From: Paragordius varius
Taxonomy: Eukaryota > Animalia > Nematomorpha
Length of the DNA: 64,000 nt
Reading direction: 5' to 3'
NCBI GenBank assembly: GCA_964247055.1
Contig: OZ176057.1
Location: 5,518,001 to 5,582,000, forward strand
Below, in pieces: positions 1,997-53,100 of the stretch (positions are counted from its first letter, which is position 1; every line of letters begins with the position of its first letter). The notes beneath the pieces were generated by a model, which was not told the origin of the DNA, ran no database searches, and saw only the letters and a program-made list of their open reading frames with translations. Made by a program: the position numbers and the translations under genes.

Positions 1997-4900
1997 AATA
2001 ATAATTACATTATATGATATCACTCTTTCGAGCGGTCATATCCGTAAACTATTTCGCCATAGAACCCTGTCTAAGGCGTCTTCGCGTTTTAGGTTCAGTT
2101 TTGCCATGTCCCTCTTAACTGTATCTATCCATCGCGTTTTAGGGCGCCCTTTTCCCCTCTTGCCTTTTACAATATAATCGTCAATCTTTTTACCAATGTA
2201 ATTTTTATCTCTTCTTTCAACATGTCCGAACCATCTTAAACGATTTACCATCATCTTTTGGGTTACCGATTTGATTTCCGTACTTCCTCTTATGTAGACA
2301 TTCTTCACCTTGTCTTTCCTCGTTACACCGCACATCAATCTAAGCATTCTCATTTCAGTAACCTCAAAGTGCCTCTCTTCTGATTTCTTTATTGCCCATG
2401 TCTGTGAGTTGTACATCATTGTTGGTTGTACAACAGCACTGTAAATCTTACCCTTTACTTTTAGGTCAATATTTTTGTCGCACAAAACACTTGAGATCTT
2501 TTTGTAATTTGCCCAACTATTTCGAATTCTTAAATTAATATCAAGTGTTAAAGATCCATCAGCTGCTAGTATTGCTCCTAAATATTTGCATTCTTCCTGA
2601 CCTTTTAATACCCACCCTTCTTCTAATTCTATTTCTCGTTTTTTCCCACCAAAATTTATCAGTTCCGTTTTCTTTTTGTTAACTTTTAATCCGCAACGTC
2701 GTAACACATCCATCCATTTACCCACCGATTCTTTTAATTCATGCATCTCGTCGGACAGCACTATTAAGTCGTCTGCATAAAGAAAATACCAGCCATCATG
2801 TTGTCCTACTTCTTTTGAAATTTCGTCCATGCATATTATAAATAGTAACGGGCTGATTGCAGACCCCTGATAGACCCCTTCGTTTATTGTAATAGGACCT
2901 GATATTCCCTGGTGAGTTTTAATTTTGGTTTGGTGTGATTCGTACATGCTTTTTAAAATCTTTATGTAACTTTCAGGGACCTTTTTCCGTCTTAAGCTCC
3001 ACCATATTGTGCTCCGAGGTATTCTGTCAAACGCCTTTTCAATATCAATACAAATACCATGCAACTCCTTTTTCATTTCTATATGCTTCTCGATTAGCCT
3101 TCTTACTGCGTGAATTGGGTCAATGGTGGATTTTCCTGGAATAAAACCAAATTGATTACCCTCAATACTAACCATTTTTCTTATTCTTTTCTCTAGTACT
3201 TTCTCAAATAACTTCATTGTATGCGACATCAATCTTATCCCTCTGTAATTATTACAATCATTAATATCTCCTTTACCCTTGAAAATGGGAACAGTGAAAC
3301 TCTCCTTCCATTCGGTTGGTATCATACCTGTAGTAACTACATTATTAAAAATATCTGCCAAAAATTCAATACCTTTTCCTGACAATATTTTCCAACAGTT
3401 TATGTTAATATCGTCTGGACCTGCAGCCTTATTTATTGACATCTCTTCTAAACCAGCCTGGACTTCTTCCCTTGTTATACTTTCAATATGCGCAGATTTA
3501 TAATCTGGTGTTTCGGGTAAACTTGTTTCACTGACGCCCAATTCAAGTTCCTGGAAATATTCTTTCCACCTTTTCAATATTTTCGCTTCCTCAACGAGTA
3601 ATTTGCCTTTTTTATCTTTAATGGCTGTCGCATAAGGGGGCAAGTCCAGCTTTCTTCTTTGTCTTTGTCGAGCAATTTTAAAAACTTTGTTTAAACCTTG
3701 CTTACTGTTCAACTCTTCATATAATGATGCCGTCTTTTCTTTTTTGACCAATCTTACAAGCCTTTTAAGTTCCTTATTAATCCTTTTATATTTTTCCTTG
3801 TCTTCTGCTTGGTGGGTAAACCTCCACGTTTTAAAAGCTTTTCTTTTCTCTTGCGATTTCAGAATTATTTTTTCGTCTTTCAGCCATGCCTCTCTATAAA
3901 CCTGATTTCTGCCACCTTTCATTCCGCACACCTTAACTCCCGCCTCTCTTATATTTTTTGCCACCTGAGACCAAACACTTTCTGGATCACTGTTCCTCTC
4001 TAGTATGCCTACCGTTTCTACAAATCTTTCTTTACTGTTTCTTAGAGAATCCCATTTAATTACCTTCGGCGCTATAGGCTTAGGCTTTTTGGCATTTATT
4101 GGTATATCTGTCATATATTTACACATAATTAAATTGTGTTGTGTGCTAATCTGCAAGTTAGGTATCACTTTGCAGTCCAAAACAAACTTTAAAGACTTTC
4201 GTGGCACTAGAATATAATCAATTTGTGACTTCTTATTTCCACTTTCGTAGGTAATTAAGTGGCTCTCCCTTTTCGTAAAAAAAGTATTTGTTATAGCAAA
4301 GTTATAAGATTGGGCAAATCTTAATAAACTAGCCCCTTCTTCATTTATAACCCCGTAACCTTTTCCGCCGTGCCAAGGTTCAAAACCTCTCCTATCTTGT
4401 CCCACGTGCCCGTTGAAATCACCACAAAATATAATTTCTCTGTCTTTCGTTAATGAAGTCATTTCTGCGTCTAACAAATCATAAAATTTATCTTTCTCTG
4501 GTTTAGTTAAACCTATCTGGGGGGCATAAACGCTAAAGATAGTAAAAACCCTCTTATTTAACAATACGTCGACACTTATGATTCTACTGTCAGCACGTCT
4601 AACCTCAATTACTTGATTGGCAAATCTTGGGCACACTATTATGGCAACCCCACAGTAACCATCCGTAGAACCTGAATAAAACATTTTATAATTACCCTCT
4701 AACGTCTTAGTACCATTTCCACGGTATCTGGTCTCCTGAATGCACAAAAAATTTACTTTTTTTACCCTCATAGTTTCAACTAAATCATATAACTTACTTT
4801 TTAACGAACCAACATTTATACTGGCAAAACACATTCTACAACCTTCCTTATCCCTATTGGCCCCTACCTCCGTGCAGCGACTGGCCGGGTCTGGCCTGCA

Positions 4901-5347
4901 CGCCTTACAAAAAACACTCATAAAAAACAAAAATACAATAAAGAAGAAGAATAATGTAGATAATAAACACTAAGATATATAGTAACTAATATATAAAGCA
5001 ACTAAAAAAGAATCAAAAGATTTTAACCAAAAATATAATAATAATAATAATAATCTAAAAAAGAATCAAAAATTTTAACCAAAAATATAATAATAATAAT
5101 AATAATAATTAAAAAAGAAATACATAAATATATATCAATTAGTAAAAATGAAATAAAATAGAATACGAATCCTATTGAATTGGAATATTTTTCTAAGGTA
5201 ATTTCGTGCATTTTTTGAAAGAATGAGAAAAACTGATAAAAGATAGAATAAACTTGGAAAATAAATAGATAACAATGATAATTATAATATATGTTATAAG
5301 TAATAAGAATTGTATTTGAAGGTGTCGAGCACGCGGGTGTAAAAAAC
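1997..5347 (-). mobile_element. Full-length RTE-clade non-LTR retrotransposon (LINE)
   Basis: 19-bp direct repeat ATATGGGGTGCTATATAAT at 1978-1996 and 5348-5366 (TSD). Single APE+RT ORF, a ~425-bp AT-rich 5' UTR and a short (TTA)n 3' tail. Confidence 0.95.
2036..4921 (-). CDS. RTE retrotransposon polyprotein (apurinic endonuclease + reverse transcriptase), ~961 aa from ATG 4921
   Basis: Uninterrupted ORF. APE motifs NVGSL, CIQET, SVYAPQ, GDFNGHVG and SQIDYIL; RT motifs YRGIRLMS, QFGF, DIEKAFD, GVYQGSAISPLLF and YADD; RTE-type C-terminus LRWFGHV...GRPKTRW. Confidence 0.97.
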   Translation of the reverse strand: MSVFCKACRPDPASRCTEVGANRDKEGCRMCFASINVGSLKSKLYDLVETMRVKKVNFLCIQETRYRGNGTKTLEGNYKMFYSGSTDGYCGVAIIVCPRFANQVIEVRRADSRIISVDVLLNKRVFTIFSVYAPQIGLTKPEKDKFYDLLDAEMTSLTKDREIIFCGDFNGHVGQDRRGFEPWHGGKGYGVINEEGASLLRFAQSYNFAITNTFFTKRESHLITYESGNKKSQIDYILVPRKSLKFVLDCKVIPNLQISTQHNLIMCKYMTDIPINAKKPKPIAPKVIKWDSLRNSKERFVETVGILERNSDPESVWSQVAKNIREAGVKVCGMKGGRNQVYREAWLKDEKIILKSQEKRKAFKTWRFTHQAEDKEKYKRINKELKRLVRLVKKEKTASLYEELNSKQGLNKVFKIARQRQRRKLDLPPYATAIKDKKGKLLVEEAKILKRWKEYFQELELGVSETSLPETPDYKSAHIESITREEVQAGLEEMSINKAAGPDDININCWKILSGKGIEFLADIFNNVVTTGMIPTEWKESFTVPIFKGKGDINDCNNYRGIRLMSHTMKLFEKVLEKRIRKMVSIEGNQFGFIPGKSTIDPIHAVRRLIEKHIEMKKELHGICIDIEKAFDRIPRSTIWWSLRRKKVPESYIKILKSMYESHQTKIKTHQGISGPITINEGVYQGSAISPLLFIICMDEISKEVGQHDGWYFLYADDLIVLSDEMHELKESVGKWMDVLRRCGLKVNKKKTELINFGGKKREIELEEGWVLKGQEECKYLGAILAADGSLTLDINLRIRNSWANYKKISSVLCDKNIDLKVKGKIYSAVVQPTMMYNSQTWAIKKSEERHFEVTEMRMLRLMCGVTRKDKVKNVYIRGSTEIKSVTQKMMVNRLRWFGHVERRDKNYIGKKIDDYIVKGKRGKGRPKTRWIDTVKRDMAKLNLKREDALDRVLWRNSLRI

Positions 5348-43000: not shown

Positions 43001-43914
43001 AAGGCGAAATGCATACCTTGCAAACACCTGCCTCAGTCCCCTACCATATCCGATAATGGTAAACTTTATCCAATTTTACATACTGTAATAGAATCAAAAA
43101 TTTTTAACATAGATATTCTCATAAACAAATTGGGTTCTCTATTTTCACATTTTATTAAGTGTAACCGCCAAATACGGAACGATTTTAAGGAAACAGAATC
43201 ATTTAGATTGCATCTTGTTTCAATAAATAGGAGTGTTATTTCCGATTTCAATAGCAACTAATATGATGTTCTAAATTTTACGGGGTAGGAAGTTGGAATA
43301 AAAGATATTGTTAGCTCTTAACTTTGATTTTATGTCGATTTTTCCATCAAATTCTCAGTACTTTCTTTTTAAGCCGTTTTCCAAAACATAATCTAAAATT
43401 AATTTTAATGTTGTTTTTAGTTTTGTAGCTTACGTGTCAGTTTAGAAAGTTATATCATTTGCATATATTTTTTCAAACACAGGTTAATTTTAATGGACAC
43501 CAAATTATGCCCATTGCGAGTAGCGGAAAGCCGGATATAAAAAATGCTAAAAGCGTCGTCCAAAAAAACATGGAAGAAACTAATTATTTCGCAATCAACT
43601 TGACATCAGATGCCATTTTACAATCGTTTATGAAATGTTATCCATTGATTGATATACTGCATGCAATTGAGGCACCTTTAAACACCATAGATTATTTTAG
43701 TTTAGATGTGGATGGCCCTGAATTCGATATTCTAAGATCCATACCATGGTCATTGCTTAATATAAAGGTATTAAGTGTTGAGTATAGACATTATCCATTC
43801 TCAACAAACGATGCAGTTAAGGGAGAAATGATTGAATATATGCGCGAACTAGGATACAAATACAATGAGCTTGGTTTTGATTTAATTTTTGTTAAAAAAG
43901 ATGATGCGTTGTAA
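40016..43914 (+). CDS. Star-like FkbM-family (Methyltransf_21) type II membrane protein, 4 exons, ~380 aa
   Basis: Exons 40016-40185, 41334-41679, 42864-43058 and 43483-43914, GT-AG and in phase. N-terminal TM; motifs YSQIGQD, NGFFIECGA..G..SNTLYFE...WTGLLIEP, IDYFSLDVDGPEFDILRSIPW and IKVLSVEY. Confidence 0.9.
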
Positions 43915-50100: not shown

Positions 50101-53100
50101 TCAACAATTCAAATTCACCCCCTAAAATAAATTATGTGTTTTTTAAGATTTAAAATCGCCTATATTTTTTAAATTTATAAAAAAATATACGTTTAAAATT
50201 AATATAATACTGTTATAATAATAAACTATGCCATAAGAATATATTTCTTGTTAAATATGATAAGTTATATTAGCAGCCCGAAAACGCAAAATTTATCTTT
50301 AGGGTGTTGAATTTGAATTGTTCAAGGGTAAATTAGAATTATAATCGTATAATGATAGGAACAAATTAAAGAGATGTTAAAGAACATATATTTCTGTTGT
50401 TCAAAGAAAATAAATGCAAAAAAAAGAAAAATACCATAATCAGGATTAAAAATTTGTTGAATGACAAGTTGAAAAAATTCTTTGCTCAGTCCACCCTGGT
50501 CATGACCAGTTTCGCCCTCAAATTCAACCAGCAGTTGACGTCTAAGGTATTCTGGATTTTCTTCAACAATCATTTCCAACTAAGCAACCAACAATCAAAA
50601 GCATTACATTAGATAAAACATTTAAACTTAATAACAGTTGTTAAAATCCGTAAGATAACGATAAAATAGAATTAAATGAAAATATAAATAGAAATAATTA
50701 TAATGTGAAAACACCAAGTCAAATGGTAATCGCAGACTAGTTTCGTGCTTGTTAGCACTCATCAGTACGTACGAAACAACTATTTGACTTGACTTGGGGT
50801 TGGTTTCACATATCGATTTCGTATATATTCTATTTATACTTTGATTTAATTCCATTTAATATTCCTCTATGTTATCCTTCCTACGGATTTTAACAACTGT
50901 TATTACAAAACATAACCAATCCGTTATTTACCATTTAAACTTAACCCCCATATATTCTACCATTTACAATTCAACATCACCCTTAAACAACTCAAATTCA
51001 CCCTTAAACAACTCAAATTCACCCTTGAACAATTCAAATTCACCCCCTAAAATAAATTATGTGTTTTTTAATATTAAAAATTAGTTATATTTTTTTATAT
51101 TTTTAAAAACAGAAATATTGTTTAAAATTAAAATAATACTGAAAAATCAATAAACTATGCCATAAAAATATATTTAATTTTAATGATATATTAGACTGAA
51201 ATTTCATAATTTATTTTTAGGGTGAATTTGAATTGTTCAAGGGTGAATTCGAATTGTAAATGGTATATTTACAGTGAAAATTGAAATTATACGGACAAAG
51301 CGTGTAAAAATATAAAGACAATTCTTTTCTAAAAGACAATAACCATACTTTTTCACACCTTAATTTTTCCTTTATAAGCTATTTTTTAATTACGAATGTA
51401 AGATATAAAATTGATTGTGTAAGTTATAAATATATATATCTGTATTTCATACTTTTCAATAATTAAATAATAAGTTATAATTAAAAAAATCAAGAATTAA
51501 AACGCATGATTGTCTTTAAAAAAAAATCCGTCTTTATATTTTTTTACGTTTTCTCGGTATAATTTTAATTTTTACTATATATTAATTAACCTGAATTATA
51601 TTTTAATGCATAAATATTTAAGATGCCATAAAAATTTAGGGCAAACAAAACACTTAAAAAGTGAAAGTTTTATTTTTACTTTTAATTTTGTATAATACCT
51701 ATAAAATTGATTTTTCCAATTTACATCGAAAACGATAGGTTAAATTTATAGAAAAAAAAACAATAATAATATTTACAAATCTGGTCTTTGAAACAATTAT
51801 TTGTATTATTGACAACTAGAAATCACAATAAGTTTTCCTAATCCAATTATTTTTAGATACAAATATATAAAACTCTCTTTTTCATTGTTAAACCATGTAA
51901 AGCTTGAATTAAAATTTCAAATAATTTTGTTTTTTAAGTTTAGTTAATAAAAAATTTCATTTTTTTCCTACATTTGCTAAACAATCAGCTATAAGGTGAG
52001 AACGCCTAACATGGAATCGTAAATAAGCTTCAAATTCTTGTGGATGATTTTCATTTGGATTTTCATTTGGATTTAAAGGATTTCGGTTTTGATTTAAAGG
52101 ATTTCGGTTTTGTTGAACATTTATACCATTTATATTATTTTCGTGAGAATTATTAAGTAAACTTTGAATAAATAGTACGCGTCTTTCATCATACATACGT
52201 ATACGATTATCTAAATGTAACCCTAAAATGTATAATATATATATATATACCATTTAATATTCACCTTGAACAATTCAAATTTACCCCCTTGAACAATTCA
52301 AATTCACCCCCCTTGAACAATTCAAATTGACTGCCCTAAACATTCAAATTCACCCTTGAACAATTCAAATTCACCCCCCCCCCCCCCTTGAACAATTCAA
52401 ATTCACCCCCTTTTAGACAATTCTAATTCACTTATATGTCTTTTAAGATTAAAAATTAACTATATTTTTATATTGGATTCGTATTAACGTCGTGAATAAT
52501 GAAAGAAAATAAAAATAAATTTATTATAGTTTCGCCCAATGGCATCATCAGGAGTTGTTAAAAGAAAAAACTTAAAATAAAGTACAGCAAAGAAAAAAAT
52601 ATAAAATGAAATTAAATGTGAGACAAATCAATACATATAAATTGATACAATGGACAAAGGAAAGTAACATGCCATTGGGCGAAAATTTGAGTCTATAATA
52701 AATTTATTTTTATTTTCTTTCTTTATTCACGACGTTAACACGAACCTTATTTAAACAACCCATCGTCGTCCACTCAATTTATATTTTTATATATTTTTTA
52801 AAAAATAAAATTTTGTTTTAAAATAAAATAATACTGAAAAAATAATAAACTATGTCATCTATAAAGATATATTTCATATTAATATGGAGTCATATTAGTT
52901 CAAAAACACATAATTTATTTTTAGGATGATTTTGAATTGTTCAAGGGTGAATTTAAATTGTTCGAGGATGTATTTGAATTGTTAAAGGGTGAATTTGAAC
53001 TGTAAATGGTATGTATATGTATGTATGTATATATATATATATATATATTTTATACTACACCGAGCAAAATTAATTAAAATTTGGTAAATTTTTATTTAAG

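Follow-up and report, generated by a model that had tools for sequence, protein, structure and literature searches.

A hammerhead ribozyme at the apex of a repeated fold-back element in an intron of a UBE3A-like gene of Paragordius varius

The stretch analysed here, called the window, is 64,000 nt of Paragordius varius DNA (assembly GCA_964247055.1, contig OZ176057.1, positions 5,518,001 to 5,582,000), and all coordinates are those of the window. At 50629-50905 it holds a 277-nt fold-back with a hammerhead ribozyme motif at its centre, in an intron of a gene related to the ubiquitin ligase UBE3A. The question was what kind of element this is, how it came to the site and whether it acts on its host gene. 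An earlier sequence-only reading, made by a model from the letters alone, had offered several answers, which are taken up below where the evidence bears on them. The analysis showed a 303-nt insertion flanked by a target-site duplication of 10-13 bp, whose ends and core recur in many copies across the genome. With moderate confidence, we read it as a solo, probably dead copy of a non-coding, non-autonomous retroelement of about 303 nt, of the hammerhead-bearing kind represented by Penelope-like elements (PLEs) and non-LTR (non-long-terminal-repeat) retrozymes.

The ribozyme motif and the fold-back that carries it

The following features make up the fold-back.

50735-50765, minus strand: hammerhead core with helices II and III (CUGAUGA, GUGCU-AACA-AGCAC, GAAA, C-UA-G-U-C17), from direct reading, an HH9 alignment below threshold and contig depth (summed 2.4e5-3.6e5, with about 170-330 in the unique flank).
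50766-50905, minus strand: 5' rod arm of 140 nt, with the 5' strand of helix I at its inner end, from arm alignment and fold.
50629-50734, minus strand: 3' rod arm of 106 nt, which opens with the 3' strand of helix I at the first base past the cleavage site, from reading, fold and arm alignment.
50629-50655, no strand: terminal inverted repeat, low-coordinate copy, complementary to 50879-50905 at 26/27 positions and perfectly so over the outer 24, from repeat search and contig depth (about 2.1e5).
50879-50905, no strand: terminal inverted repeat, high-coordinate copy, from repeat search and contig depth.

Direct reading of the minus strand placed CUGAUGA at 50765-50759, a 5-bp helix II at 50758-54 (GUGCU) and 50749-45 (AGCAC) around a 4-nt AACA loop, GAAA at 50744-41 and C-UA-GUC at 50740-35. 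All conserved core positions were present (C3 U4 G5 A6 N7 G8 A9, G12 A13 A14, A15.1-U16.1, C17), and helix II was closed by a G10.1-C11.1 pair. C17 fell at 50735 and was followed by helix I, which puts the predicted scissile bond at 50735|50734. The topology was that of type I, with helix I open, helix II closed and helix III reduced to 2 bp (C-G and A-U) with a 2-nt loop. The helix III strand, ACUAGU, is a palindrome able to pair with a second ribozyme. Judged from these letters, helix III appears unable to close within one molecule and should form only between two ribozymes, through ACUAGU. A minimal helix III with a palindromic loop is typical of metazoan type I and Penelope-associated hammerheads (PMC4209133), and hammerheads with a short helix III have been described in salamander repeats (PMC7229834). 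The sequence-only reading had claimed a complete type I hammerhead with this helix II, GAAA, GUC cleavage site and ACUAGU palindrome, and every detail was present in the sequence; its assignment to the minimal, dimer-dependent metazoan type is supported by the 2-bp palindromic helix III.

The motif was exact and unique within the window in both exact and lenient descriptor scans. Of 300 Markov-simulated windows, 15 also yielded a complete motif with the lenient descriptor, so the motif by itself is only moderately improbable, and it is the genomic repetition and the position that carry the argument. An Rfam search, which the same reading had proposed as a check, gave zero matches at the gathering score. 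Below that threshold, Hammerhead_HH9 aligned end to end within a 501-nt slice at E 4.6e-4, with 25.3 bits where the gathering score is 52; the loss of score fell at helix III, and a score below gathering is expected for minimal helix III variants.

The fold-back had a predicted energy of -94.7 kcal/mol, compared with -45.0 +/- 4.5 for shuffled sequences (z -11.1), and that of the opposite strand was -85.0. The ribozyme sat at the apex, with helix I as the innermost part of the rod; in this copy helix I has 4 bp beside the core, followed by a loop and a long extension, and in the family-majority variant 6 bp. The outer arms were 26/27 complementary with the outermost 24 positions perfect, and the inner arms were much poorer (96 of 141 aligned columns identical, about 68%, with many indels). 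The 5' arm held small duplications (CGUACGUA and CAAGUCAAGUC) and about 34 nt without a counterpart in the 3' arm. Each arm, read in its own sense, ended in the same 3' sequence, ...ACGGATTTTAACAACTGTTATTA, which continued on one arm only into an extension (the tail). The claim that helix I runs on into element-long complementarity ending in a perfect 24-bp inverted repeat was thus borne out (24/24). Of the proposed 277-bp rod-like element, the fold-back at 50629-50905 is real, but the mobile unit is 303 nt long (50629-50931).

Genomic repetition, boundaries and target site

Logan contigs from four public runs, representing three organisms, were aligned to 50585-51200 at 80% likeness. The runs are probably genomic DNA, because the depth of the unique intronic flank (about 170-330) equalled that of ordinary contigs. 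Summed contig depths, which by the tool's own warning are not copy numbers, were as follows (run X1 / run X3).

Low flank, 50606-50626: 172 / 335.
Outermost 40 nt at the low-coordinate end: 2.1e5 / 3.1e5.
Outermost 21 nt at the high-coordinate end (50879-50899): 2.0e5 / 2.6e5.
Ribozyme core: 3.6e5 / 4.5e5.
Inner arms: 6e4 falling to 4e2.

Termini and core exceeded the flank depth about 1000-fold in the four runs, which cover three organisms; organism C had the same profile on a lower scale, and in organism B it was faint. In one run, at least 45 different contigs spanned position 50725. The low-coordinate terminal repeat showed no variant above 10% in the contigs, and depth was near-unique at 50837-50878, inside the 5' arm. 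The ends and core of the element are therefore repeated hundreds to a few thousand times in the genome, and the inner arms are variable among copies or private to this one. The element had been called a lone copy; this was true only within the window, where searches with the core, with the inverted repeat and by sensitive blastn found no second copy and only AT-rich noise.

Other routes to further copies were negative within their scope. An exact 31-mer scan of metagenome contigs gave 0 matches. A translated search with the element's internal 75-aa open reading frame (ORF) found no relatives and no candidate ORF of other copies. The exact look-up of a 205-aa exon ORF and of the ORF of a long interspersed nuclear element (LINE) in the window gave no match for other contigs, and neither did a homologue search with the 205-aa exon ORF aimed at the orthologous intron in relatives.

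The contig data bear on one of the earlier proposals, that the locus is a DNA copy of an exogenous circular RNA, viroid-like or deltavirus-like. A rod-like fold with a hammerhead is what such an RNA would have. Against this, only one ribozyme polarity was present, the sequence was AT-rich like that of the host and had no coding capacity with relatives, and its repetition in genomic contigs, with target duplications, was about thousand-fold and seen in several organisms. The genomic repetition, the one-sided extension and the target duplication speak against an integrated rod-shaped circular RNA, and we regard it as extremely unlikely.

The boundaries of the repeated unit did not coincide with those of the fold-back, and three further features are needed to describe them.

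50906-50931, minus strand: one-sided 26-nt extension, GUAAAUAACGGAUUGGUUAUGUUUUG on the ribozyme strand, part of the repeated family, from contig depth and fold.
50619-50631, no strand: target-site duplication, copy 1, CATTTAAACTTAA on the plus strand, from direct-repeat search, simulation and depth.
50932-50944, no strand: target-site duplication, copy 2, from the same three sources.

The depth bin 50900-50920 was the highest of all (4.4e5 in run X1 and 5.7e5 in run X3) and reached past the fold-back end at 50905. The next bin, 50921-50941, fell to 0.31, 0.28 and 0.39 of this value in three runs, and single-position depth at 50950/50951 was back to about 265, the unique level. Assuming a flat profile, the high-coordinate family boundary lies at about 50927-50931. 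At the low-coordinate end, depth was full in the bin 50627-50647 and unique below about 50627. Because depth stays high past 50905 and is unique below about 50627, the repeated unit is about 50628-50931, that is, the fold-back plus the one-sided 26-nt extension. No variant exceeded 10% at any position of 50798-50949, which argues that the match across the extension comes from true family members and not from chance look-alikes. An effect of likeness between the extension and the element's own terminus was considered as the source of the depth and rejected, both on this ground and because the likeness scored weakly (15-16).

An exact 13-nt direct repeat, CATTTAAACTTAA, had its inner edges at both depth boundaries. 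The last 3 nt of its first copy overlap the fold-back end, so that the duplication measures 10-13 bp. Among 20000 simulated flank pairs, 3 reached a 13-nt repeat so placed (p about 1.5e-4) and 62 reached 10 nt. Depth and direct repeat, as two independent lines, thus both indicate an insertion of 303 nt and a target-site duplication of 10-13 bp. Before insertion, the site would have read as a single TTAAGTTTAAATG.

The extension forms a small hairpin, is AC-rich on the plus strand and, by contig depth, seems to be present in most copies, constant rather than optional. It is a candidate counterpart of the PLE 'tail', or else the distal loop of a circular or tandem unit. The PLE enzyme of the anole initiates at an AC-rich stem-loop (PMC11167929), which the plus-strand hairpin of the extension may recall; this likeness is a lead only.

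These boundaries also bear on a class II origin. Under this alternative, the element is a miniature inverted-repeat transposable element (MITE) or other fold-back DNA transposon, with the hammerhead carried or captured at its centre, and a DDE transposase recognising the 24-bp termini moves it. Perfect 24-bp termini next to diverged inner arms, the high uniformity of the termini across copies, ends that read TA...TA with CAGT 7 nt inside, and a window full of other MITEs are all in its favour. The TA at both ends, however, is automatic from the palindrome. Terminal inverted repeats as in a MITE were found (24/24 perfect, 26/27 overall), but a fixed duplication abutting both of them was not, and the family ends differed from the repeat ends by a 26-nt offset across which depth stayed high. 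The repeated family runs 26 nt past one inverted repeat and stops at the other, and the significant 10-13-nt direct repeat brackets the extension plus the fold-back, not the inverted repeats. A DNA transposon also gives no reason for a core as conserved and as abundant as the termini. We consider this origin unlikely, and the description of the element as MITE-like was not supported, given the one-sided extension and the offset duplication.

Mode of spread, state of this copy and the host gene

The one-sided extension together with the 10-13-bp target duplication fits a retro-insertion of the Penelope-like or retrozyme type, not to a cut-and-paste MITE. Insertions of PLEs include partial tandem copies and inverted copies truncated at the 5' end, with a tail on one side and duplications of variable length (PMC8557442). 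The PLE enzyme nicks and extends both strands, and the tail is the interval between two internal start sites of the reverse transcriptase (RT) (PMC11167929). Metazoan retrozymes measure 170-400 nt, have low GC and are highly self-paired (PMC7229834); a 2026 preprint traces non-LTR retrozymes to the Penelope pseudo-LTRs (pLTRs) and reports that solo monomers are common among them (10.64898/2026.07.22.740005). The unit described here was 303 nt long with a GC of 0.29, a highly self-paired RNA and no coding capacity with relatives, and as a short (170-400 nt), low-GC, non-coding type I hammerhead unit it falls within the description of a non-LTR retrozyme. The minimum free energy of the unit was -94.6 as a circle and -99.7 as the monomer released by two cleavages. 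If the unit is circular or tandem, its terminal 27-bp stem is closed by a loop made of the 26-nt extension, which gives a complete rod with the ribozyme at the opposite end. The earlier proposal of a new ribozyme-bearing non-autonomous element therefore stands as to a non-coding, non-autonomous mobile element with a rod-like fold, and fails as to novelty, the Penelope/retrozyme kind being already known.

The retroelement reading suggests the following course. Family RNAs with two ribozymes, either from tandem or dimeric source loci or as two RNAs paired through ACUAGU, would cleave to unit length, and the rod would keep the two RNA ends side by side, so that they can be ligated into a circle. 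An RT/GIY-YIG enzyme of the Penelope type, acting in trans, would then start the complementary DNA (cDNA) at a fixed internal site, the distal rod end at the junction of arm end and extension. Staggered nicks would lead to a unit-length insertion with a variable duplication. A copy with a single ribozyme, being unable to release the unit alone, would be a dead end.

Several observations weigh against this reading. The window held one ribozyme and one unit, and neither a tandem array of the unit nor a second ribozyme was seen in the 64 kb searched, so that the tandem arrangement with two ribozymes per transcript was not found there. No RT/GIY-YIG ORF was found within the element, as would mark an autonomous PLE, and the window contained no Penelope RT/GIY-YIG gene, its sole RT being that of an APE-type LINE. 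The boundaries, the duplication length and the arm conservation rest on binned contig depth, not on a base-by-base second copy. A test for G-U strand asymmetry gave no excess on the ribozyme strand (6 vs 7 pairs), and this single copy thus shows no strand-specific sign of RNA-level selection on the rod. Finally, the contrast between a perfect 24-bp terminal inverted repeat and far less well matched inner arms has the look of a DNA-transposon MITE and is not described for retrozymes.

The paired arms could also have arisen in the act of integration. By this account, a Penelope-type two-strand insertion, here or in a master copy, joined two cDNAs head to head, both truncated at the 5' end and copied from the 3' region of a longer hammerhead-bearing element, one of them tailed, and the rod is an integration by-product and not the shape of a functional RNA. 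It agrees with an enzyme that nicks and extends both target strands and with two RT start sites, which explain an optional one-sided tail (PMC11167929), with the commonness of inverted 5'-truncated copies beside PLEs (PMC8557442), and with two arms that end in the same 3' sequence, only one of which carries the extension. Arms made in one event should be near-identical, however, and here this is so only of the outer 24-27 bp, the rest being about 68% identical with many indels; because the arms are so strongly unequal, formation of the fold-back at this locus is argued against. The core-plus-termini pattern is common to many copies, so such an event would have taken place at most once, in the master copy, and the extension appears to be present in most copies and not optional. 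This account seems improbable to us.

A more specific form of the retroelement reading is tentative and, on balance, doubtful. It proposes a family of roughly one thousand 'hairpin retrozymes', retroelements which spread as single rod-shaped units and not as arrays, with a dimer-type hammerhead completed by two inverted arms and with DNA ends at the distal rod tip. If this is true, a Penelope-type RT would begin copying an uncleaved or circular rod RNA from one fixed internal site, and with identical 3' ends on the two strands, either of them might act as template. Hammerhead repeats are common in invertebrate genomes, and how they are copied turns on their template, on where the RT starts and on what the ribozyme is for. 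Sharp, conserved ends opposite the ribozyme, with an extension and clean duplications, would be a natural read-out of the RT start site. Such a family would reveal which form of the RNA, cleaved, uncleaved or circular, serves as template, a question that in vitro work with the anole element did not settle (PMC11167929).

As to the state of this copy, it carried the minority letter in all four runs at positions 50725 and 50775. The majority letters on the RNA are U and G, which turn an A.C mismatch into A-U and a U.U mismatch into G-U in helix I, and the predicted energy of the ribozyme region changed from -26.4 kcal/mol in this copy to -32.1 with the majority letters. About a quarter of the family, by depth, lacked the CGUA duplication beside the core; in this variant a 6-bp helix I is followed by an internal loop, an arrangement canonical for metazoan type I ribozymes (PMC4209133). 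Because its two minority letters weaken helix I relative to the family majority, this copy appears to be slightly decayed, with a better ribozyme in other members of its family. A weakened helix I would be expected of a decaying copy in a family whose ribozyme is selected elsewhere.

The host gene is represented next to the element by one exon.

50430-50579, minus strand: exon of the HECT/UBE3A-like gene, acceptor AG at 50581-50580, from matches of neighbouring exons to Pfam HECT and to UBE3A structures.

Stop-free minus-strand stretches at 50579-50430, 49771-49514, 46310-46143 and further on were HECT-domain exons (Pfam HECT matches with E 2e-13 and 1.6e-12), and their best solved relative was UBE3A/E6AP (4e-13, compared with 1e-4 for TOM1). 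Because these exons are on the minus strand as well, the ribozyme is sense to the pre-mRNA, as had been claimed. The element ended 49 nt upstream of the acceptor, and in the interval 50580-50628 a CTAAT branch-like site and the pyrimidine tract were intact.

Could the ribozyme serve the host by cleaving the UBE3A-like pre-mRNA for regulation? The sense orientation in an intron, 49 nt from the acceptor, would suit such a role. Conserved intronic hammerheads are known in amniotes (HH9 family, Rfam RF02275), which also counts in its favour. Set against this, helix III is not expected to form in the monomer and there is no partner within 64 kb, the two substitutions private to this copy make its helix I weaker than that of the family, dispersed copies of the element are very numerous, and minimal hammerheads of the PLE type cleave poorly even as dimers in vitro (PMC4209133). 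We judge a regulatory role highly unlikely. The suggestion that the element could cut the E3-ligase pre-mRNA found no support and met with the same obstacles, namely the open helix III, the missing partner and the two changes in helix I. Most likely, this copy is a neutral, slowly decaying insertion, tolerated by the intron because the branch site and the acceptor were spared; as an ordinary intronic transposon copy, it is probably of no consequence for the gene.

Several neighbouring features were observed in the window. A MITE-like element at 50958-51265 adjoined the ribozyme element, and its 51-nt terminal inverted repeats consisted of 21-nt units in tandem (GGGTGAATTTGAATTGTTCAA). When the window was searched with 30 nt of this terminal repeat, 21 matches came up, grouped at about a dozen sites, and the element's summed contig depth, up to 1e7 or about 5e4 times that of the unique flank, made it the most abundant repeat seen. 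Termini with the 21-nt repeat were found in inverted orientation at 50303-50344 and 50964-51049, in the introns on either side of the HECT exon 50430-50579, and could pair across this exon in the pre-mRNA, favouring its skipping or back-splicing. An upstream exon of the UBE3A-like gene at 51957-52253 (minus strand) encoded an Asn/Pro-rich repeat (NRNPLNQ twice, then NPNENPNEN) from a short tandem DNA repeat. Derivation of this exon repeat from the neighbouring 21-nt-repeat MITE was considered and rejected.

The LINE of the window lay at 2036-4930 (minus strand) as an intact 964-aa non-LTR retrotransposon ORF with an APE-type endonuclease and an RVT_1 domain; it is not Penelope-like, and its GC was higher and strongly skewed compared with the surroundings. 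Just past the last HECT exons of the UBE3A-like gene (to about 44900), on the opposite strand, a stop-free stretch at 43459-43914 (plus strand) had a weak match to an FkbM-type methyltransferase domain (Pfam PF05050, E 6.5e-8) and is probably an exon of an unannotated gene.

Comparison with known systems

The element shares with metazoan non-LTR retrozymes (PMC7229834; Li et al. 2026 preprint) the type I hammerhead, a unit of about 300 nt, low GC and a self-paired RNA, as well as target duplications longer than 4 bp and, in those systems beside arrays, the occurrence of dispersed solo monomers. It differs from them in that no tandem copy was present in the window, and in its perfect 24-bp terminal stem, its ends at the distal end of the rod and its conserved one-sided 26-nt extension.

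Penelope-like elements and their pLTR hammerheads (PMC4209133, PMC8557442, PMC11167929) have the same minimal, dimer-dependent hammerhead with a palindromic helix III, and also an inverted-repeat insertion architecture with a one-sided tail and a long target duplication, which in PLEs is variable. In contrast to them, the element has no RT/GIY-YIG ORF. Its putative tail is 26 nt long and seemingly constant, while theirs is 30-40 nt and optional, and one ribozyme straddles the junction of its arms, while theirs lie one inside each pLTR.

The hammerheads of newt and salamander satellite 2 are alike in a helix III too short for cleavage as a monomer and in activity as dimers (PMC7229834). They form long tandem satellites of about 330 bp, whereas the unit here is single and dispersed.

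With MITEs of the Stowaway or Tc1-mariner type, the element has in common that it is short, AT-rich and non-coding, with terminal inverted repeats and a hairpin-forming transcript. It is set apart from them by a 10-13-bp duplication offset by 26 nt at one end, by a repeated family that runs past one inverted repeat and by the conserved ribozyme at its centre.

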